Below, piece by piece: positions 6,850-60,212 of a DNA stretch of 64,000 nucleotides (the stretch's first letter is position 1; each line of letters begins with the position of its first letter). The DNA is from Podarcis melisellensis. Its lineage: Eukaryota. The stretch lies in NCBI GenBank assembly GCA_964234715.1, contig OZ174276.1; one strand, written 5' to 3'. Under the pieces are notes generated by a model, which saw only the letters and a list, made by a program, of their open reading frames with translations, had not been told where the DNA came from and made no database searches. The position numbers and the translations under genes were made by a program.

Positions 6850-7105
6850 TTTATACATACATACATACATACATACATACATACATACATACATACCCCG
6901 CCCATCTGGCTGGGTTTCCCCAGCCTCTCTGTACAACAGAATATTAAAAACAGAATATTAAAAACACGGTAAAAGATCAAACATTAAAAACTTCCCTAAA
7001 CAGGGCTGTCTTCAGGTGTCTTCTAAAAGTCAGATAGTTGTTTATTTCCTTGACATCTGATGGGAGGGCATTCCACAGGGTGGGCGCCACTACCGAGAAG
7101 GCACT
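6850..7105 (-). mobile_element. L2-type LINE 3' end with (ATAC)n tail
   Basis: Microsatellite tail followed by cccgcccatctggctggg...gggagggcattccacagg; near-identical to the copy at 12886-13120. Confidence 0.6.
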
Positions 7106-12929: not shown

Positions 12930-13120
12930 TTATTATTTATACCCCACCCATCTGGCTGGGCTTCCCCAGCCACTCTGGGCGGCTTCCAAAAGAATATTAA
13001 AATAAAATATTAAAAGCTTCCCTAAACAGGGCTGCCTTCAGATGTCTTCTAAAAGTCTGGTAGCTGTTGTTCTCTTTGACATCTGGTGGGAGGGCGTTCC
13101 ACAGGGAGGGCGCCACAACC
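12886..13120 (-). mobile_element. L2-type LINE 3' end with (TAA)n tail
   Basis: (TAA)n 12886-12928, then sequence homologous to 6895-7105. Confidence 0.6.
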
Positions 13121-13559
13121 GACAGTTTGTGGCTCTGATTTGTCTAGTTTTATTTTATTCTTTAAAACGTACAGGTAAATATAAAGTGTTTGTTATGGTG
13201 GTTCAGGAGTTATTGAAAGTTGCCCATCCCCACACACACAAAAAACAACAACCATGATCAACATTTTAAAAATAGAATTCAGGCCCCAGTCTCTGCAAGG
13301 TTTTATAAGTGAAAGCCAGCATCTTGAATTGTACATGGATGGCCAATGCAGCTGTTTTCAAATAAGCTATATTTACAAGGTCCACCATCTGTGCAGGTGT
13401 TAGACATGTTCGCACCGCTTTTATGGAGCAAGCATAAAATCTTCATTCTGTTGCTGGACTCTGTGCAAACTAGTATGCAGAAGGAGTGAAATGGAGAAGG
13501 ATTATATCCCAGCACTGTTTAGAACCATCATTCCACTGGGCCCCAGCTGGAAGCCTTCA

Positions 13560-20229: not shown

Positions 20230-22002
20230 TTTGGCATATGAAGCAGGGATTTGGGGGGACATAAAGGGCAGCATGCCCGACCAGGTGCTTCCCAAGAGGG
20301 AAATGGTGCCTTTGCCAGCTCATTTAAGGCAAGGGGGTTGTAGGGTATGTCCCATCACATCCCAGAAGAAGAAAGAATAGGATGCAAAGGAGGTCAGGAT
20401 TGCTGCCCCTTTAAAAGTTATGTAGAAAGGGGAAATTCAGCACTCATGACATATCTAACCTTCTTCTATCTACACAGCTGTCAACAGAGACAGGAACCCT
20501 ATCCTGTATTATAGCTATTCAGCTATTTGGGAACAGCCCGATGGAACAATCTCCCTTCTCCTCTCCTTGCATACTGCTCTGGGGATTCTCCTGACCCCCT
20601 GAGCCAGTTGGCGAGGGAGCAATTAGGGAAGAGGGGCAGACTCCCCATTGTGCCAGTTGGCTTCCACCAGCAGGACCGGTTAGTTGAATCTGGCAAACGT
20701 GCAATCTAGAAAATGTCTAAAGCTCAAAAGAAATCTGTGTTCCATGAAACAGAGCAGTTGCAAGTCGTAATCAGTCCCCCAAAACTGTCTGCAGAAAGTG
20801 ATTCAAATGATTTCTTCTAATTTAGATTTCTTACTTGGTTTGTTAATGTTGAGGGAGAGGGTGTTTAATTTGGTCATGTGGATGTAACAGAAGGTCTATT
20901 TAATAAAGAAGGGGGCTCCCACACCCTTAGAGCCCCTCAATGATACATTCTTTGCAAAGAGTTTTGTGAGCTTTGCCGTGGGACCTCAGCAAGGCAAGGA
21001 TTCATATTATAGTGTGTGTATTCCCTGTTCTTGATCTGGGATCTCCCAGAATAATCTTAGTGTATTTTGAAAAGATGTTTGTGATATGGTGAGTGCTGAT
21101 ACAGGGATTCTGATTCACATCACAAGATTAATTTCATTTGAGTGACCAAATAAGTCTCGATATGAGTGGAGAGAGAGAGAGAGAGAATATTAACCCCATG
21201 AGAACCTGGGGTAACTGGGTACATGAGTAGCGCTGCCTCTGGCTCCATGTTCACCCTGTCTACCAGCATCTCCAGATACATATATTCATCTAGCCTAGCT
21301 AATCTAGCCTCTGCACCTGGCTTTCTGTGTTCTGGAGAGGTCCTCTTTGCATTCCTTATCTGCACAGGTTCAGAGAGTAATAACTTGAAAACATTCTCTT
21401 CTGCAAAATGTGGTGTGCAGCCATAAATCACTTGGTGTGAGTGAAATCAGGAAGCCGTCATTGTTTCCAGTACAGTCTGCAAAGACTGGAAATCCTACTA
21501 CCACAGGCCACAGGGTTGTTGGTTTTTGCTGAGGATGTGGAATGAAATAAAGACCACACTGAGTTTGGAAGGACCCATCTAAGTGTCTTAACTGTTGTAT
21601 TTCACAAAGATAGATGACTTCCCGCCTGTGTGACTTTGAGTGGCTTTCCCACCCTCCTCAGCTCCTGCTGGGTGAGACTATTTTTTCAACACTGTAGGTT
21701 TTTATATGCTGTTAACACTTAAACCAGACTCACTCCCCAGCTGTTGCCGAGAACCCCAGATCTATAAGGCAGATCTTTCTGCTTTGGGGTGAAGAATTCA
21801 TATGTTTCACACACATTTACTGACTCTTTCTTTTTGTCTGCATCTGGATCCAGCAGATCCTAAGCAGGGCATCTATTTCCTCTCTTAGGGGGATGCAAGT
21901 CTACTTACGGCCTCACTCTTTAACAGAGTAAAACATCATCAATAGACTTAGGGGTGAAATATTAGCAGTGATGTGTAGCTATTTGGTACATGCTGGGATA
22001 AC

Positions 22003-22417
22003 GTGGGTGGTGCTGTGGGTTAAACCACTGAGCCTTGGGCTTGCTGATCAGAAGGTCAGCAGTTCGAATCCCTGCAACAGGGTGAGCTCGCGTTGCTCGG
22101 CCCCTGCTCCTGCCAACCTAGCAGTTCGAAAGCACGTCAAAGAGCAAGTAGATAAATAGGTACCGCTCTGGAGGGAAGGTAAACGGCATTTCCATGCGCT
22201 GCTCTGGTTTGCCAGAAGTGGCTTAGTCATGCTGGTCACATGACCCGGAAGCTGTATGCCGGCTCCCTCGGCCAATAAAGCGAGATGAGCGCCGCAACCC
22301 CAGAGTCGGTCACAACTGGACCTAATGGTCAGGGATCCCTTTACAAGAAAGAGAGCACTCGCTTCTCCCCAAAGAGCATGTGAAGCTGTCTTATACTGAG
22401 TAAGACTACCTTTACCT
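22003..22417 (+). mobile_element. Sauria SINE with a 64-bp inverted local insert in its tail
   Basis: Homologous to the other Sauria SINEs here; tail CCCTTTAC..[insert 22344-22407]..ACCTTTACCT; probable TSD GGATAAC (21996-22002, 22419-22425). Confidence 0.88.
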
Positions 22418-22491
22418 AGGATAACAGATGTTGTCCTTGCACTTTGTAAGCAGGTCCATCCAAAAAACTAAAAGGCAGGACTTTTCTCTTA

Positions 22492-22680
22492 GGGAATGAC
22501 CTTTCATGGCTCAGTGGAAGACCACAAGCTTTGTATTAGAAGTTCCCCGGTTCAATTCCTGGCTTCTACAGTGGAAAGCCTCCTGTAGCAAATGACCTCT
22601 GATTGAGTCCCTGGAGAGATAGGAAAACAGGACTGCAGGTTTAACCAGTCTTACTCAGTATAAGACAGCTTCACATGCTC
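22492..22680 (+). mobile_element. Old tRNA-derived SINE; related copies at ~7700-7850(-), 29110-29530 and 42930-43090
   Basis: A-box-like TGGCTCAGTGG and B-box-like GGTTCAATTCC; shared 3' end ..ACTCAGTATAAGACAGCTTC. Confidence 0.6.
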
Positions 22681-23431
22681 TTTGGGGAGAAGCGAGTGCT
22701 CTCTTTCTTGCGCTTCTACTTGCTCACATCAGTGGCCGACTAGAAACTCAGGCATCTGTGTTGCAGGCCTGACCTTAGTTTAAATCCCTAGCTGTGCTTA
22801 CTTAATTCTAATCTGGGTAAGTTTCCAGTCCTGTGTGTCACTGTGAAGGCTGACGTATGACAAAAGCCCCAAAGAGTTTTGCATGCAGACCTAGAACCAC
22901 TCTGCCTCATCTCAAACCCAGTGTATGTTTCATTTCTTCATATGAGAAAGAAGTTTTAGAGAAACAAGGTCACGATGCTTGGAATCACCCTCTTCTCGCT
23001 GCTGCTGCTGCTGCTGCTGCATAAAAACGTTATGTCCTCTCTGTTCAGATCCCTCTTGCTCGCTCTTTAGGAAATTGGTTTTATTTGTAGTAAATGGGGA
23101 AGCTGAGAGAACCAGTGCTTTCTGGTTGGGTTGGTGGGGTTTCCCTCCCTGCCTGAGTCTAGCTGAGTTAAAAAGTGAACGTTTTCAAGTTTCACTTGCT
23201 GCCACAGCTCAAGACTGCCATCACTAGAACATAGGCAGCAGCACTCAACCTGCTTTCCGTATCACTAACCAGGAGTGAACTGCAGACAGGCATTGTGAAG
23301 AGTGAGGCTCCTGAAATGAACATACGTAGCTCTCAAAACTAGCGATCCACCTCCCCACCCCTCCCCACCCCGAGCAGGAAAAGGGTGACTCACTGAACCA
23401 CTCTTTTTCTACTCCCCGCTCCCTTCTTTAG

Positions 23432-43771: not shown

Positions 43772-43908
43772 TCAGCAACCGTTTAGAATTTAAGTACTCT
43801 GAGTGGGGACCACATCACCAAAGTTGCATTAAGGCTGAAATCCTATACGTATGTACTTGGGAGAAAAATCTCATTGAACTCAATGGGACTTATTTCTGAG
43901 GAGGCATG

Positions 43909-44675
43909 TGTCAGGGTTTCTGGGAGAGAGGAGGAGATGACAGAGGAGACGGAGAGCGAGTGGGAGGAGGGGCAGAAGGATGAGGAAGAAGATGACGGAA
44001 TTCTGAGGGAATCCACGAGTCTGAGCAGCGAGTCAGAGGATTCTCAAAAGGGGGTTACCTTAATCAAGCAAAGGGGAGGAGAAGGGAGAAGCGGAGAGGA
44101 GCCCAGTGGAAGACAGAGGAAGCAAGAGACGTCTCAGCCGGAACGGAGTAAAGGGGGTGGAGTCGTCAGCCTCTCGGAGGGAGCAGGATTAGGAGAGAAC
44201 AGAGAGAGGGGGTTGGAGCAGGGTGTTCAGCCGGAAAGGGTGGAGAGCAGAGCAGGGGGTGGTGTAGCGGTCGAAAGAAAGGTCAGCAGCAACGTACGCG
44301 CGCCAAGTTCAAACGTAGAGGCGCGCGGAAGTGGAGAGAGCTCAGGGGAGGAGCCCGGCCCTAAAGCCAGAAAGAGGGGGGAAGAGGCGGCAGAGGATTC
44401 AGCCTCAGGCGAGTCACGGAGAGAGGGAACCCAGGGGGGCAGGAAGACCCTGCGGAAAAGAAAGGAGAGGAAGAGGTGGTCTAGAGCCAGGCTATTAAGT
44501 TGGTGCGGAAGAGGGGAGGAGTCAGAGGGGACTTCAGCGGTCTAACGTGGCAGACGTACGGCCACAATGCTGAACTGTATGAGAAGCAGAAATCTTCAAT
44601 AAACTTTTCCTGTAAATAAGCTGCAACGGAGTGAGGTCTCTTGTGAGCTGGGACCAGTCCTGGGTGGCCGTGACA
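43909..44675 (+). repeat. 5' LTR (767 bp): U3 43909-44523, TATTAA 44493-44498, predicted TSS 44524, AATAAA 44598-44603
   Basis: Direct repeat of 49636-50402 with no differences seen by eye; TG..CA ends. Confidence 0.97.
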
Positions 44676-44677
44676 GT

Positions 44678-44688
44678 AAGTCCCCTCT
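44678..44688 (+). promoter_or_regulatory. Self-priming primer-binding site (AAGTCCCCTCT)
   Basis: Exact reverse complement of AGAGGGGACTT at 44524-44534; no TGG-starting tRNA PBS present. Confidence 0.85.
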
Positions 44689-44735
44689 CAGAAAGCAAAA
44701 ATTTTTTTTTGCGAAGCTCACGAACGGGAGCAGCC

Positions 44736-45812
44736 ATGAGCGCTGAGGAGCAGCTGGTTGCATTGCGGAATCAGGTTACCGCTCTCACATCGGCAGTCAT
44801 TGCTTCGCAGAAGAAGAATGACGACTTGGAGAAGACGTGCCAGGATTTGCAGGCAAGGTGGGAGCGCGCGGACAAGGCGGGGGCCCCAGGATCCAGAGCG
44901 GAGGGCATTGCGCTTGGACGGAGGGGGGGTGCCCTAGTTCCGCATTTTAATGGCAACTTGCAAGACTATCCCAATTTCAGAGCGGACGTTGTATATGCAC
45001 TGCACTTACTCCGTCACGATTTTAAAGATGAGGAGGAGAAAGTGGGGTTCATTGTTTCGCACCTGCATGGGGAGGCCAGGGCTTGGCTACGCAATTTGTG
45101 GCGCGAAGATGGACCGGCCCGTCGCGATTCAACTGCGTTCATCAAAGCGATGGATTCTTGTTTTCAATCCTCTGTGGATGTGGACATTGCGCGCCGTCAA
45201 ATGCACGGGCTGAGGCAGGGGAAAGCGACTGTGCGCCAATACCACTCTAAGTTTTTTGCATTGCTCACCGCCTTAGATTGGCCAAAGGACAGTAAGCCGG
45301 TCAGAGATCTTTTTTGGGAGGGATTGAGCCCCCCCATCAAGGATGAGATCGCTAGGGGGGACAGACCCCAGACCCTAGAAGACGTGGTGCACCGGGCTTT
45401 AGCTATTGGAATTCGACATGAGGGGCGTCCGTGGCACGAGGAGGACGGGCCCCAAGCGCGTGCGCAAGCAAGGACTCTCCCTTTTGTGCACAGGGACTTC
45501 AGCCGTGCGCACCCCTCGCCAATGGGGAAGGACAGAGAGGAGCCAATGGAGATTGGTGGTGCTAGGGCTCAGAAGCCATCCCAGAGCCCTGTCCCTGGTG
45601 CAGCCAAGGCGAAGCCTCCTAGAGGAACCAGGAAGTGTTACATCTGTGACAGTGCGCACCATATGGCGAAAGAGTGCCCCCAGAGGCTCCAGAAGCACAC
45701 TGCAGCGCTGGCAACTGTAACAGCAGAGGTGCAACCAGGGGAGCAGCTTCAGGGAAACGACAATGCCTGGCTGGAAGCAGAGCTACTGGGGCTCAGCCAG
45801 GCGGATCTGTAG
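44736..45812 (+). CDS. gag: Gag (358 aa): coiled-coil N-terminus, retrotransposon capsid, EPMEIG motif, CCHC zinc knuckle
   Basis: gccATG Kozak context at 44736; CYICDSAHHMAKEC = CX2CX4HX4C; LRQG and FWEGL capsid motifs. Confidence 0.95.
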   Translation: MSAEEQLVALRNQVTALTSAVIASQKKNDDLEKTCQDLQARWERADKAGAPGSRAEGIALGRRGGALVPHFNGNLQDYPNFRADVVYALHLLRHDFKDEEEKVGFIVSHLHGEARAWLRNLWREDGPARRDSTAFIKAMDSCFQSSVDVDIARRQMHGLRQGKATVRQYHSKFFALLTALDWPKDSKPVRDLFWEGLSPPIKDEIARGDRPQTLEDVVHRALAIGIRHEGRPWHEEDGPQARAQARTLPFVHRDFSRAHPSPMGKDREEPMEIGGARAQKPSQSPVPGAAKAKPPRGTRKCYICDSAHHMAKECPQRLQKHTAALATVTAEVQPGEQLQGNDNAWLEAELLGLSQADL

Positions 45813-45824
45813 ACAAGCCCCCAG
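45752..45824 (+). promoter_or_regulatory. -1 programmed ribosomal frameshift signal (G GGA AAC + H-type pseudoknot)
   Basis: Slippery heptamer 45752-45758 in the gag frame; 6-nt spacer; stem GCCTGGCTG(45765-73)/CAGCCAGGC(45794-802); loop GGGGCT can pair with AGCCCC(45816-21); pol is in the -1 frame. Confidence 0.9.
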
Positions 45825-48800
45825 CATCACTGCAGAGCGTGGACCCTTTGCCTCCCAAACCGGCAGTTCTGCTCACAGCAACACTCCAGTTACCTGATGG
45901 GAGACTCCTCGAGGTTCCAATAACGATCGATTCGGGAAGCAACGCCGACTTCATGGGACTGCAGTTCGTTAAGCAGCACAACATGGCGCTCCTGCCTGCA
46001 ACGACGCCTCTGAACGTGGTCACGGTGGACGGCAGGAAGTTGCTGGGGGGGCAAGTGGTGCAGCAAACCCCTCCCATGATGATGCAGATTGGCAACCATC
46101 GAGAACTTATTAGTTTCAATGTCACCCACTTATCGGACACACCCATCGTGTTAGGCATGAGTTGGCTGGAGAGGCACAGTCCCGCGGTTGCGTGGTACCA
46201 GAGGCAGATCAACTTTTGTTCATCGTATTGTGCTCAGCATTGCTTTCAGACCGATCAGGGAGGAGAAGCTGAGCAGCCATTGCATCTGGGTATGGTGCAA
46301 ACAGTGCCTCACAAGTACCAGGAATTCTTGGAGGTTTTCTGTGAGAAGGAAGCTGACAAGTTGCCGCCTCATAGACCTTACGACTGCGCGATTGATTTAG
46401 TGCCAGGGGCGCAATTGCCTGCTGCCAAGCTGTACTCCATGTCGGAGGACGAAATGCAAGAGCTTCGGGAGTTCATAGACCATAACCTCAAGCGAGGTTT
46501 CATCCAGGAATCTAAAGCAGCGGGAGGCAGCCCTGTTTTCTTTGTGAAGAAGAAGGACACGCCCCAAAAAAGGCTTATAGTGGATTACAGGTTCATCAAC
46601 AGCTTGACTAAGCCCAAAGCTTTCCCCATGCCCAAAATTGACGACCTTTTAGCGACCGTCAGGAGGGGCAAGATTTTCACCAAGCTGGACCTACGTGGAG
46701 CTTACAATCTCATCCGCATCCGGAAAGGAGATGAGTGGAAGACCGCCATGTTCACCCCTCTGGGCACATACGAATACAGAGTCATGCCTTTCGGCCTCCA
46801 AAATGGCAGCCACGTTTTTCAAGCATTTATGCACCACGTGCTAGCAGGTCTCCTCTACAAAAAGTGTGTCTGCTTTCTCGACGATATCCTGATTTTCTCG
46901 GAATCGCCGGAGGATCACGATAAGGACGTGAGGGAGGTCCTGCAGAGGCTGAAGGAACACAGGCTGTATGCCAAGTTGGAAAAGTGCCAGTTTGATGTCA
47001 GAGAGGTTGATTTCCTTGGCTACAAGTTGTCCGACGAGGGACTGGCCATGGACAGGGCTAAGGTTCAAGCGCTGTTGGACTGGAAAAGCCCTCGAAATCG
47101 GAAAGAGGTCCAGAGGTTCATCGGCTTTGCCAATTTTTACCGCAAGTTTATTAAAGGTTTTGCGAACGCGACGGCGGCGATCACTGACACCCTCAGTTCC
47201 AAGAAGAAGAAGTTCGTCTGGACCGAACAAGCGGAGCGGTCCTTCCGGACGCTTAAAGGTCTTTTCGCCTCCGAAGAGCAGCTGCTCCACGTGAATCCCG
47301 GCAGACCCATGCGGGTAGAGACCGATGCGTCAGATAGAGCGGTTGGGGCCGTTCTTTTGCAAGAGGATTCACAAGGCAACTGGCGACCGGGTGCGTTCTA
47401 CTCCCGGAAGCTCAGCAAGACGGAGCGCAATTATACCATATGGGACAGGGAGTTGTTGGCCATTCATGCAGCTTTCAAAGCGTGGCGACACTTCTTAATA
47501 GGAGCCAAGCACACGGTGCAGGTCCGCACGGATCACAAGAACTTAGAGTATTGGCGGACGGCTAAGTTGCAGACCCAGCGACACATGCGCTGGGCGGAGT
47601 TCTTTGCGGACTTCGACTTCAAAATAGAATACATCCCAGGAGACTCCAATGTTATTGCAGACGCGCTGTCCCGAAAGCCGCAATACTTGGAGGAAGCAGC
47701 TCCAATCGCAGCAAAGCACATTTTCGCACCGCAGGCGTGGACGTGCGCTACCATCGCAGTCGACCTGGACGCGGTGCGACGCGCGTTGCAAAGGGATCAG
47801 TTTGCACAGTCTAAGATGGAGGAGCTACGCGGAGGGTCGCGACACAACGATGAGTTTCAATTACAAGATGGACTTTTGACTCGTAAGGGTGCCCTTTACG
47901 TGCCCACCGACGATCTTCGAGCCAAGGTTTTGCAACAGTTGCATGACGCCCCTAGTGCAGGCCATTTCGGCAAAGAGAAGACGATGGAGTTGGTGGCTAG
48001 AGACTTTTGGTGGCCCCAGATGAGAGGAGAGGTGGCGGACTACGTCGCCAGGTGTGATATCTGCCAGAGGTCCAAACCAGTGCACCAGAAGCAGGCGGGA
48101 TTGCTAGAACCGCTGGAGACACCGCAGCAACCGTGGGAGAGGGTAGCGTTGGACTTGGTTACAGACCTGCCCAGCTCCAGAGGTAAGACGGCGGTGTTAG
48201 TGGTGGTGGACTTGTTCACCAAGATGGCGCACTTCATCCCTTGTGCCAAGGTGGCGACGGCAGAACAGACCGCAAAGCTCTTCATCGATCACGTCTTCAG
48301 AGTGCATGGACTTCCGCAGTCCGTCTTGTCCGACAGGGGGCGCCAGTTTGTTTCCACTTTCTGGCGAAAGCTTCTGGGCATCTTGCACGTCAAAATCAAC
48401 CTGACATCGGCGAGGCATCCACAAACCAACGGTCAAGCGGAGAGGGTCAACGCGATCATGCAGCAGTACCTGCGGTGCTACGCCAACCAGCGACCTGCGG
48501 CGTGGGTGGACTATTTGCCGATGGCTGAATTCGCCTACAACAACACGAAACACGCTTCCACCGGGGTGACGCCTTTCTTCGCGAACAATGGCCGTCATCC
48601 CAGAACCTTCCCGAGATTTGCGGCACCAGGAGGGGGGGGGCCTCAAGATGCCGACCAGTTTGCAGCGGAGTTGCAAGAGGTGCACGAGGAGCTGCGGAGA
48701 CATTTGGAGCTGGCAAAACAGGCGTATAAGGTGCAGGCCGATAAGCACAGGAGGGCGGGAGAGGACATCCAGGTTGGGGACTGGGTGTGGTTAGCAGCCC

Positions 48801-50272
48801 ACGCGATGCCGGCCAGGTCATTGGCCAAGAAGAAGTTAGGACACAGGCAGCTAGGGCCATATCAAGTTGAGGCTAAGATCAATCCGGTGGCTTTTCGTCT
48901 AGCCCTTCCGGAAGGTTCCAGGGTGCACCCGGTCTTTCATAGGTCGGTGCTCACTCCCTACAAAACCCCACACAGGTTTCAAGAGTCAGGAGCACCCCCA
49001 GAGCCACGTAGGAGGGCGCCTGAGAGGGGGGAATCGCCAAGACCAGAACCTCTTAACGAGGTCACAGAGATACTGGACTCGAGATGGGGGGAGGAGGGAG
49101 TTGAATATTTTCTCGCCAGGGAGGGCACACCAGCCGCTGCTAATAGTTGGGTGCCAGGCTACGAGTTAGACGAACCCCTTTTGAAAGGAGAGTTCCATGC
49201 ACTTTTCCCACATAGACCCATGCCAGCTGAGTACTTTGATGACTGGCTTTTCACACCCACATTGTCTGATAGCACGTTCAGGGGTTTCTCTTCCCCCGAG
49301 GAAAGAACACCAGAATCAAGCCCGCCCAGGGGATCGTGCTCGGGGGTGGACACGGAAACCCCTTATTGGTGGGAGGAGCAGCCAGAGGGGGAATGGCGTA
49401 AGAGGTGGCTGATAGGTCCTTGGCGGGCAGCACCGGAGGAAGTAGCGATGGAAGCAGAGACTGAGAAGCATTTGGGGGAAGAACCCGACTTCGAATACAC
49501 TTACACAGAACTGCCAGCGGAGAACATTGACGTAGACGACCTGTATCCTGAGCCTACCCCCGAAGAGCCGCAGTTTCCACAACCGGTCCCCGGCGAGCGG
49601 GAGGGGGGAAGGGGGGGCTTCGAGGGGGGGATGGATGTCAGGGTTTCTGGGAGAGAGGAGGAGATGACAGAGGAGACGGAGAGCGAGTGGGAGGAGGGGC
49701 AGAAGGATGAGGAAGAAGATGACGGAATTCTGAGGGAATCCACGAGTCTGAGCAGCGAGTCAGAGGATTCTCAAAAGGGGGTTACCTTAATCAAGCAAAG
49801 GGGAGGAGAAGGGAGAAGCGGAGAGGAGCCCAGTGGAAGACAGAGGAAGCAAGAGACGTCTCAGCCGGAACGGAGTAAAGGGGGTGGAGTCGTCAGCCTC
49901 TCGGAGGGAGCAGGATTAGGAGAGAACAGAGAGAGGGGGTTGGAGCAGGGTGTTCAGCCGGAAAGGGTGGAGAGCAGAGCAGGGGGTGGTGTAGCGGTCG
50001 AAAGAAAGGTCAGCAGCAACGTACGCGCGCCAAGTTCAAACGTAGAGGCGCGCGGAAGTGGAGAGAGCTCAGGGGAGGAGCCCGGCCCTAAAGCCAGAAA
50101 GAGGGGGGAAGAGGCGGCAGAGGATTCAGCCTCAGGCGAGTCACGGAGAGAGGGAACCCAGGGGGGCAGGAAGACCCTGCGGAAAAGAAAGGAGAGGAAG
50201 AGGTGGTCTAGAGCCAGGCTATTAAGTTGGTGCGGAAGAGGGGAGGAGTCAGAGGGGACTTCAGCGGTCTAA
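45758..50272 (+). CDS. pol: Pol (expressed as a ~1845-aa Gag-Pol): protease, RT, RNase H, integrase, GPY/F module, degenerate chromodomain and an acidic/basic tail running through the 3' LTR
   Basis: IDSG protease; MPFGL and FLDD RT; ETDAS/ELLAI/TDHKNL/ADALSR RNase H; HHCC + D,D(35)E integrase; GPYQV..HPVFH; EILDSR..YFL..NSWVP; uninterrupted ORF. Confidence 0.96.
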   Translation, partial: RQCLAGSRATGAQPGGSVDKPPASLQSVDPLPPKPAVLLTATLQLPDGRLLEVPITIDSGSNADFMGLQFVKQHNMALLPATTPLNVVTVDGRKLLGGQVVQQTPPMMMQIGNHRELISFNVTHLSDTPIVLGMSWLERHSPAVAWYQRQINFCSSYCAQHCFQTDQGGEAEQPLHLGMVQTVPHKYQEFLEVFCEKEADKLPPHRPYDCAIDLVPGAQLPAAKLYSMSEDEMQELREFIDHNLKRGFIQESKAAGGSPVFFVKKKDTPQKRLIVDYRFINSLTKPKAFPMPKIDDLLATVRRGKIFTKLDLRGAYNLIRIRKGDEWKTAMFTPLGTYEYRVMPFGLQNGSHVFQAFMHHVLAGLLYKKCVCFLDDILIFSESPEDHDKDVREVLQRLKEHRLYAKLEKCQFDVREVDFLGYKLSDEGLAMDRAKVQALLDWKSPRNRKEVQRFIGFANFYRKFIKGFANATAAITDTLSSKKKKFVWTEQAERSFRTLKGLFASEEQLLHVNPGRPMRVETDASDRAVGAVLLQEDSQGNWRPGAFYSRKLSKTERNYTIWDRELLAIHAAFKAWRHFLIGAKHTVQVRTDHKNLEYWRTAKLQTQRHMRWAEFFADFDFKIEYIPGDSNVIADALSRKPQYLEEAAPIAAKHIFAPQAWTCATIAVDLDAVRRALQRDQFAQSKMEELRGGSRHNDEFQLQDGLLTRKGALYVPTDDLRAKVLQQLHDAPSAGHFGKEKTMELVARDFWWPQMRGEVADYVARCDICQRSKPVHQKQAGLLEPLETPQQPWERVALDLVTDLPSSRGKTAVLVVVDLFTKMAHFIPCAKVATAEQTAKLFIDHVFRVHGLPQSVLSDRGRQFVSTFWRKLLGILHVKINLTSARHPQTNGQAERVNAIMQQYLRCYANQRPAAWVDYLPMAEFAYNNTKHASTGVTPFFANNGRHPRTFPRFAAPGGGGPQDADQFAAELQEVHEELRRHLELAKQAYKVQADKHRRAGEDIQVGDWVWLAAHAMPARSLAKKKLGHRQLGPYQVEAKINPVAFRLALPEGSRVHPVFHRSVLTPYKTPHRFQESGAPPEPRRRAPERGESPRPEPLNEVTEILDSRWGEEGVEYFLAREGTPAAANSWVPGYELDEPLLKGEFHALFPHRPMPAEYFDDWLFTPTLSDSTFRGFSSPEERTPESSPPRGSCSGVDTETPYWWEEQPEGEWRKRWLIGPWRAAPEEVAMEAETEKHLGEEPDFEYTYTELPAENIDVDDLYPEPTPEEPQFPQPVPGEREGGRGGFEGGMDVRVSGREEEMTEETESEWEEGQKDEEEDDGILRESTSLSSESEDSQKGVTLIKQRGGEGRSGEEPSGRQRKQETSQPERSKGGGVVSLSEGAGLGENRERGLEQGVQPERVESRAGGGVAVERKVSSNVRAPSSNVEARGSGESSGEEPGPKARKRGEEAAEDSASGESRREGTQGGRKTLRKRKERKRWSRARLLSWCGRGEESEGTSAV
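49596..49635 (+). promoter_or_regulatory. Polypurine tract
   Basis: G/A-rich run ending GAGGGGGGGATGGA immediately before the 3' LTR. Confidence 0.85.
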
Positions 50273-50402
50273 CGTGGCAGACGTACGGCCACAATGCTGA
50301 ACTGTATGAGAAGCAGAAATCTTCAATAAACTTTTCCTGTAAATAAGCTGCAACGGAGTGAGGTCTCTTGTGAGCTGGGACCAGTCCTGGGTGGCCGTGA
50401 CA
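49636..50402 (+). repeat. 3' LTR (767 bp); U3 is translated in the Pol frame
   Basis: Direct repeat of the 5' LTR; the Pol stop TAA 50270-50272 lies inside it. Confidence 0.97.
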
Positions 50403-50546
50403 GCATGTATAAGATTGCTTTAATGGTACAATCTTTGGCTTGGTTCAGTATCTGCTGCCTAAGTGCAGAGGTCATTACAGGAGATTTTCAAATACAGAAA
50501 CAATCAGTCTCTAAACATTGCTTTACCAACAGCAAGGAGCACTTAC

Positions 50547-55289: not shown

Positions 55290-56320
55290 ATTCCCAGCAT
55301 GTTTGCAGATATCTACGCTGGTCATGTTCACAGAATGGAAGATGACAGGATCCCAAAGGATCCCCTACAGGGAGCTGGCTTCAGGCATCAGGTCTGCTGG
55401 CAGACCAACTCTGGATTAGAAAGATGTATGCAAATGTGACATGAAGACTAACAACATCAACCCTGCCATTTGGGAATCCCTGCAGGACCTGGAAACAGTC
55501 AGGCTGTGCATCCACAGCAGTGGCCAAAGGGGAATGACCACTGGGAGGAGCGCAGAGAGAAGAAACACCATGATGGATCTGTAGCAGCACAACCTGACAC
55601 CTTCATCTGCCCCAGCTACAATATATATAACTATCTCCTGTATTGGTCTCTACAGCCACAACAGGCGCTGTAACCTTACAACAGTTTGACTTCACTCACA
55701 AAGGCACACTCTATCAGGGTTGGAGTCAGACACAGGTTAGTAATAAAGGAAGCAGATCTCCATTATCTCTTTATTCAAGGGAACAAACACACAACTCGAC
55801 CTAGTGATCTCAGCAAACTATGCCCCTATGGAGCAGTTGCCAGGACTGAAGGTCCCTGTCTTCCATGCCTCTCTAAGGCTCTTCCCCAGCAATCTCAAAT
55901 TGCGTGTGCATACCTCTGGTCTCTGTCCTTCCCTCCTCATTATTCTGCTTGTTCTGGGAGATGGTGGAGGGGAGCTTGTTGAAGCAGGATAGATTCCTGG
56001 GATTCTTCAGCAGCCTCCTGACTCCCCTCCTCTGCTTCAGCTGCTGAATGTGAACTACTCTCTGGCACAGGATCTCCCTGCTCACTAAACCCTGTTTCCC
56101 CTTTGGCATTCGGCACTTCTTCCCAATCATCTCCCTTTGTCCTCTCCTCAGTGTCCCACCACTGATCTCCTGGTTCTGAGCCTTCCTCCTCCTGGGCTCC
56201 CCCTTGGGGGTTCCCTGGCAGATGCCTCCCCCTACTCCCCTTCCTCCAGCCAGTCCCTGACACACTCCTCCATTGTCTCCAGAAAGAGACAGATGCTGAG
56301 ACAACAGCAGAACAGCACCT
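55290..56320 (+). mobile_element. RTE-clade LINE 3' fragment, split by a solo LTR
   Basis: Encodes ..GHVHRMEDDRIPKD..ELASG..GRP.. (RTE ORF C-terminus); resumes after the LTR with ctccattgtctcc.. and a CA-rich tail. Confidence 0.7.
55712..56262 (-). mobile_element. Gypsy-type solo LTR (551 bp)
   Basis: Minus strand TGTCAGGG...CCCTGATA (decayed TGACA); AATAAA near the 3' end; perfect 5-bp TSD CACTC at 55707-55711 and 56263-56267. Confidence 0.85.
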
Positions 56321-59863: not shown

Positions 59864-60212
59864 AACGTGGGTGGTGCTGTGGTCTAAACCACAGAGCCTA
59901 GGGTTTGCCAATCAGAAGGTCAGCAATTTGAATCCCCGCGACGGGGTGAGCTCCTGTTGCTTGGTCCCTGCTCCTGCCAACCTAGCAGTTCAAAAGCACA
60001 TCAAAGTGCAAGTAGATAAATAGGTATCGCTCTGGTGGGAAGGTAAACAGCATTTCCGTGCACTGTTCTGGTTCACCAGAAGCAGCTTAGTCATGCTGGC
60101 CACATGACCCGGAAGCTGTACACCGGCTCCCTCAGCCAGTAAAGTGAGGTGAGCGCCGCAACCCCAGAGTTTTTCGCTACTGGACCTAATGGTCAGGGGT
60201 CCCTTTACCTTT
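59864..60212 (+). mobile_element. Sauria SINE nested in a short hAT-like MITE
   Basis: Homologous to 22003-22343; ACCTTT tail; AACGT on both sides. Confidence 0.85.

Follow-up and report, generated by a model that had tools for sequence, protein, structure and literature searches.

A young sushi-like Ty3/gypsy retrotransposon from a lizard with a putative Tf1-type self-priming site

Results

Organization of the element

The window, by which we mean the whole 64,000-nt stretch of DNA analysed here, carries on its plus strand a Ty3/gypsy (sushi-like) LTR retrotransposon at 43909-50402 that appears complete. Its features are:

43904..43908 (+): target-site duplication GCATG, left copy; same 5 nt at 50403-50407
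43909..44675 (+): 5′ LTR, 767 nt, TGTCAGG...CGTGACA with TG...CA ends; 100% identical to 49636-50402
44493..44498 (+): TATA-like box TATTAA, 31 nt upstream of the predicted transcript start
~44524 to ~44620 (+): R, and ~44621 to 44675 (+): U5; approximate, predicted border
44524..44534 (+): predicted transcript nt 1-11 (R start), putative self-primer AGAGGGGACTT; exact complement of 44678-88
44558..44565 (+): R strand of an 8-bp helix without mismatches, the other strand being 44664-44671 (U5); present in the MFE and centroid folds; status uncertain
44598..44603 (+): AATAAA polyadenylation signal, from whose region the R/U5 border was placed
44676..44677 (+): spacer GT, 2 nt between LTR and PBS (1-2 nt in relatives)
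44678..44688 (+): putative primer-binding site (PBS) AAGTCCCCTCT, complementary to the predicted 5′ end of the element's own transcript
44736..45812 (+): gag, 358 aa, Ty3-capsid/PEG10-like, with a CCHC knuckle (assigned from domains and gag similarity)
45674..50272 (+): pol frame, 1532 codons, with PR, RT, RNase H, IN, SH3_Tf2-1 and a long acidic tail running through the U3 of the 3′ LTR
45752..45758 (+): G GGA AAC, a slippery heptamer when read in frame with gag, within the gag/pol overlap (-1 frameshift site)
49622..49635 (+): polypurine tract GAGGGGGGGATGGA, preceding the 3′ LTR
49636..50402 (+): 3′ LTR, identical to the 5′ LTR
50403..50407 (+): target-site duplication GCATG, right copy

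A preliminary description of this DNA had taken the element for an intact amniote copy, and the identical 767-nt LTRs, the 5-bp target duplication, the polypurine tract and the open gag and pol frames all agree with that view. Since the two LTRs are identical the insertion should be recent, and the element is apparently an intact, very young sushi-like Ty3/gypsy copy.

The pol frame is -1 relative to gag. Pfam searches identified Ty3-capsid and Retrotrans_gag domains in gag, where PF19259 and PF03732 exceed their cut-offs and PF16297 scores 26.3 bits, below its cut-off of 29. In pol they returned protease, RT, RNase H, the zinc and core domains of integrase, and a Tf2-1-type SH3 fold, so that the Ty3/gypsy order PR-RT-RNase H-IN is present with Ty3-like RT and IN. 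The closest solved structures are Ty3 Gag-Pol for pol (PDB code 7q5b, E = 1e-136) and PEG10 for gag (PDB code 7lga, E = 3e-4). The proteins nearest to pol are annotated in Podarcis muralis as ‘Gypsy retrotransposon integrase-like’ (83-90% identity), followed by Anolis proteins at ~50%, and the nearest named proteins overall come from lizards, frogs, fishes and fungi and are labelled ‘Gypsy integrase-like’. These identities point to a lacertid-type lizard as the source of the window. A Pfam chromodomain search of pol residues 1091-1532, which include the C-terminal region of the integrase (window positions 48944-49635), gave no match up to E = 10. Relatives at 51-61% identity carry the chromodomain PF00385, which suggests that it is degenerate or lost in the window copy. 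The LTR termini TGTCAGG and CGTGACA match the att motifs TGTYANR and CNTNACA reported for Sushi elements (PMC3601003). On three grounds, its gag, its LTR termini and the PBS layout described below, the element can be grouped with the vertebrate sushi-like elements.

An 11-nt complement at the end of the 5′ LTR

The preliminary description had proposed that the putative PBS is the exact complement of the predicted first 11 nt of the transcript. Letters and coordinates all hold: 44524-44534 exactly reverse-complements 44678-44688, and the complementarity ends at exactly 11 nt on both sides. The PBS begins after a spacer of 2 nt, because the target duplication fixes the end of the LTR at 44675. 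It had further been stated that a TGG-starting tRNA PBS is missing; there are indeed zero TGG trinucleotides from 44676 to 44735, before the gag ATG at 44736, and a tRNA CCA end therefore cannot anneal there. ARAGORN detected no tRNA gene, either in the window or among the fetched loci of relatives, and Rfam returned only a snoRNA-like match at chance level (E = 0.97). The predicted promoter elements are likewise as described, with TATTAA (44493-44498) 31 nt before 44524 and TCAG at 44522-44525. As a separate observation, GTAAGT, the consensus for the intron start of a 5′ splice site, lies at 44676-44681, where it takes in the spacer and the beginning of the PBS; among the related families examined, none has GTAAGT at the LTR/PBS junction.

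Such a match might arise as a chance product of base composition, the LTR being GA-rich and the leader CT-rich, which places the chance expectation above 4^-11. When the LTR was shuffled with dinucleotide frequencies preserved, 64 of 5000 shuffles (1.3%) gave a complement of at least 11 nt within the first six offsets past the LTR, a rate that is inflated because the LTR is GA-rich. It also speaks for chance that AGAGGGGA occurs again at 44510. Elsewhere in the window, only 17 of ~57,000 other 11-mers are reverse-complemented within the LTR, and the signature of ACA, a spacer and a 10-mer with an upstream complement appears at ~7 places in 128 kb (both strands of the window); this signature is informative only at a defined LTR end. 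Against chance, a scan of 2000 randomly chosen positions inside the element gave no match of 11 nt, and the LTR site coincides with the position 31 nt past the TATA-like box, a box at -34 to -27 being found for just 3.7% of the positions in this LTR. Taken by itself, the 11-nt match of the window element is only moderately improbable; it is suggestive without being compelling.

The same layout in related families

Relatives were collected as the DNA around related pol proteins, and their LTRs were delimited by self-comparison. The set comprises 11 elements of ~9 independent families, from a gecko, a frog, three fishes and four further sources including environmental contigs; the closest lacertid sister families lie outside it, exact-sequence look-ups of the window's gag and of a Podarcis protein at 61% identity having matched no record. 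In 10 of the 11 elements, the LTR ends in ...ACA and is followed by a spacer of 1-2 nt and then by a stretch of 9-12 nt that has its exact complement within the LTR of the same element. The exception is a degenerate Hemibagrus copy with an internal deletion. The putative PBSs and their lengths are:

Gekko japonicus (L001): TTGCCAGCAC, 10 nt
Prochilodus (L002): AATACTTCGC, 10 nt
Ascaphus (L003): TATGCTCAACC, 11 nt
Festucalex, two elements (L004): AATAATCCGAC, 11 nt
Hemibagrus (L007): ATACTTCGC, 9 nt
NCBI assembly (L005/L006): TTGCTAGACT, 10 nt
Logan contig (L008): TTGTTTGCCTC, 11 nt
ENA contig (L009): TAACTTCTTT, 10 nt
JGI contig (L010): TTGTCGAGACTG, 12 nt

The PBS sequence thus varies between families and each pairs with its own LTR. 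When the same scan was applied per element to random internal positions, the observed match length was reached in 0-0.65% of trials. Comparing PBS and R across family members had been put forward at the outset as a check on self-priming, and the outcome is favourable: ~9 related families share the layout with different sequences. Pure chance is excluded because the layout recurs from family to family, the combined chance for ~9 other families being far below 1e-10, and we regard composition as an extremely unlikely source of the match. As the same layout returns with different sequences across families, Tf1-type self-priming is well supported in silico.

The comparison bears equally on the possibility that a host RNA primes the element, either an internal tRNA fragment (a half-tRNA of the copia type) or a small RNA complementary to 44676-44693. 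PBSs for half-tRNAs are known in other LTR elements (PMC6317226). However, the TGG start is absent from the window element, no TGG-type tRNA PBS was found next to the 5′ LTR in any of the relatives examined, and the PBS, though different in every family, always matches the LTR of the family it comes from. Host priming would thus call for a separate RNA in each family together with a coincident match in the LTR, and we consider priming by a host RNA highly improbable.

The LTR partner of the PBS also sits where a transcript would be expected to begin. In 9 of 10 families the first base of the LTR site is preceded, at a distance of 30-32 nt, by a TATA-like hexamer. This spacing played no part in picking the matches and so lends independent support; only 4-20% of LTR positions show it, depending on the family. 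The base at -1 is a pyrimidine in all 10 families and the base at +1 a purine in nine of the 10; in the window element, these bases are C and A around 44524. Because both the TATA spacing and the -1/+1 bases recur, the LTR site falls on the predicted start of transcription in one family after another, and we infer a start at 44524 for the window element. In the remaining family, that of the JGI contig L010, the actual start may lie one base later, which would make an 11-nt primer. The window element was found in six sequencing runs, all of them stored as contigs and none recorded as RNA.

RNA folding around the primer and the leader

In a predicted RNA fold of 44524-44735, nt 1-11 pair with the PBS in both the MFE and the centroid structures, and the fold of the whole leader has z = -1.7. 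Two extra helices had been offered in the preliminary description as support. Both exist as written, one of 8 bp between 44558-65 and 44664-71, the other of 9 bp with one G-U pair between 44641-49 and 44715-23, but they lack statistical support, as pairing in this region is no better than in shuffled sequences (z = -0.23 when the 40 nt that follow the primer are matched with the final 40 nt of U5). Across families, the energy of the duplex adjacent to the primer is no better than that of shuffles in six of seven cases, and one family reaches p = 0.04. The 8-bp helix may lengthen the primer-PBS duplex. Lin and Levin (1997/1998) reportedly described a larger RNA structure, with a U5-IR-like stem, around the primer-PBS duplex of Tf1-type elements. 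Further downstream, in the part of the leader that separates the PBS from the gag ATG, lies an A5/T9 hairpin (gcaaaaa tttt tttttgc, 44696-44712) that forms in the predicted fold. Contigs of run X6 carry indels at 44686-44697, just before and into this hairpin.

The duplex of 5′ end and PBS might be a real, conserved RNA structure with a role other than priming, such as packaging, dimerisation or translational control of gag, while another molecule acts as the primer. Conservation of a duplex across families does not by itself reveal its function, and the PBS directly adjoins the gag ATG in several of the fish families, an arrangement that would suit such a role. Nevertheless, the duplex always starts 1-2 nt past the terminal CA, where the 3′ end of a minus-strand primer must sit, there is no other PBS candidate at the LTR end, and the same layout has been shown experimentally to prime in Tf1 (PMC7175516). 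We therefore judge a duplex with a role other than priming to be unlikely.

Abundance, variation and a coding frame through U3

Four sequencing runs were aligned to 801 nt of the element. One organism has the family in great abundance (2526 contigs), and it is also present in three further organisms. The variable sites include, among those listed, 44506, 44550, 44566, 44580, 44620, 44656 and 44722. No listed variant falls inside either 11-mer, an absence that is not significant, with 25 rows outside the list; the four aligned runs hold no usable covariation of primer and PBS within the family. Run X5 contains a diverged subfamily with the PBS AAGTACCCTCC, the LTR partner of which lies outside the visible sequence. 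Self-priming predicts that this subfamily would have GGAGGGTACTT at the start of its R.

The pol frame stays open through all of the U3 of the 3′ LTR (49636-50272, equivalent to 43909-44545 in the 5′ LTR), and its stop lies 20 nt after the predicted transcript start and 9 nt past the self-primer. A Podarcis relative of 1498 aa (P0004) aligns to the end of the acidic tail, with ~50% identity there versus 83% in the core. In the Logan contig L008, the pol stop is 35 nt upstream of that element's primer site. The open frame may reflect a real coding U3 or may be a by-product of the GA-rich composition. Identical LTRs, very high copy number and presence in the runs of four organisms could point to a currently mobile family of self-priming chromoviruses in amniotes, in which promoter, start and primer lie within or abut coding sequence and co-evolve with it; we put this forward tentatively and regard it as rather doubtful.

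Other repeats in the window and in relatives

A second LTR-like sequence was found on the minus strand at 55669-56262, starting with TGTCAGGG and ending with GGTTACA. No similarity to the main LTR could be detected, neither gag nor pol lies close by, and the sequence is probably a solo LTR. It was also considered as another self-priming LTR and rejected, since the bases past its end have no complement inside the sequence.

Direct repeats at 6973-7096 and 12999-13122, 6026 nt apart and 86% identical, could be the LTRs of an older element; the DNA between them shows no similarity to the gag or pol of the window element. Dispersed repeats with internal inverted repeats lie at 22000-22299 and 59864-60163 and at 22367-22687 (+), and the same signature occurs on the minus strand. 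They are unrelated to the LTR element and probably belong to a SINE- or MITE-like family.

Outside the window, three JGI metagenome contigs (L010, L011 and L012) hold a related environmental chromovirus in head-to-tail arrays of LTR-internal-LTR-internal units. This chromovirus has an extra ORF of 116 aa between pol and the LTR.

Discussion

Our analysis indicates that the RNA of the window element most likely serves as its own primer for the minus strand, in the manner of Tf1, a reading to which we assign a probability of roughly 0.8. The mechanism that the preliminary description had invoked is already established in Tf1 and proposed for the vertebrate sushi group (PMC7175516, PMC4600332, PMC6317226). 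In Tf1 the transcript's initial 11 bases anneal to the PBS, and RNase H cleaves between bases 11 and 12 (PMC7175516). Elements of hosts ranging from fungi to vertebrates have been implicated in self-priming (PMC4600332), which is considered typical of the Tf1/Sushi group (PMC6317226).

Each step of the mechanism that we propose for the window element is drawn from its sequence together with the established mechanism of Tf1. Transcription would begin at 44524, 31 nt past TATTAA, and nt 1-11 of the transcript would fold back onto the PBS at 44678-88, 2 nt beyond U5. The element's RNase H would then cleave after nt 11, and the 3′ OH of the 11-mer would be elongated across the spacer, U5 and R (from nt 12 on), yielding a strong-stop DNA of ~143 nt that would be transferred to the 3′ R. 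Finally, the plus strand would copy the primer, so that the start of R would rewrite the PBS in every cycle. This renewal of the PBS, expected from the general scheme of retroviral replication, would explain the perfect 11-mer complementarity in young copies.

To our knowledge, self-priming has been proven only in fission-yeast elements, and for vertebrates it is based on inspection of sequences. The known mechanism is unchanged by the window element, whose value is that of a clearly delimited case in an amniote. This copy, in which the LTRs are identical and both gag and pol are open, yields precise predictions: a cap at 44524, an 11-nt RNA on the ~143-nt strong-stop DNA, and a cut after nt 11. 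The rule that emerges (an ACA end, a spacer of 1-2 nt, a complement of 9-12 nt and a TATA-like box at ~-31) could also be used to annotate the PBS and transcription start of sushi-like elements that are overlooked by tRNA-based LTR annotators.

Comparison with known systems

Self-primed reverse transcription has been shown experimentally for Tf1/Tf2 of Schizosaccharomyces pombe and Tj1 of S. japonicus (PMC7175516, PMC4600332). Like Tf1/Tf2, the window element has a predicted 11-nt primer from the 5′ end of its RNA and a PBS just past the 5′ LTR, has no tRNA-type PBS, and encodes a pol of Ty3/gypsy order whose integrase contains a Tf2-1-type SH3 fold. Unlike them, it resides in an animal host, its gag and pol occupy two frames joined by a -1 slippery site, and the window copy lacks a Pfam-detectable chromodomain and a statistically supported extended structure.

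For the vertebrate Tf1/sushi group, self-priming was proposed for sushi-ichi of pufferfish and its relatives (Butler et al. 2001, as cited by PMC4600332 and PMC6317226). The window element resembles this group in being a vertebrate element of chromovirus type, with a PEG10/RTL-like gag and ‘Sushi’ LTR termini, and it shares its PBS layout with the fish, frog and gecko relatives. Points of difference are that it represents a squamate (amniote) family with identical LTRs and that its PBS sequence is its own.

The PEG10 and RTL (SIRH) genes of mammals are domesticated sushi-like elements whose gag is similar to that of the window element (7lga, E = 3e-4; PF16297, 26 bits). PEG10 uses the -1 frameshift heptamer G GGA AAC (PMC10570562), and the window element has the identical heptamer in its gag/pol overlap. 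This common heptamer ties the lizard element to the sushi/PEG10 lineage. In contrast to the mammalian genes, which have lost LTRs, PBS and mobility, the window element appears to retain all of these.
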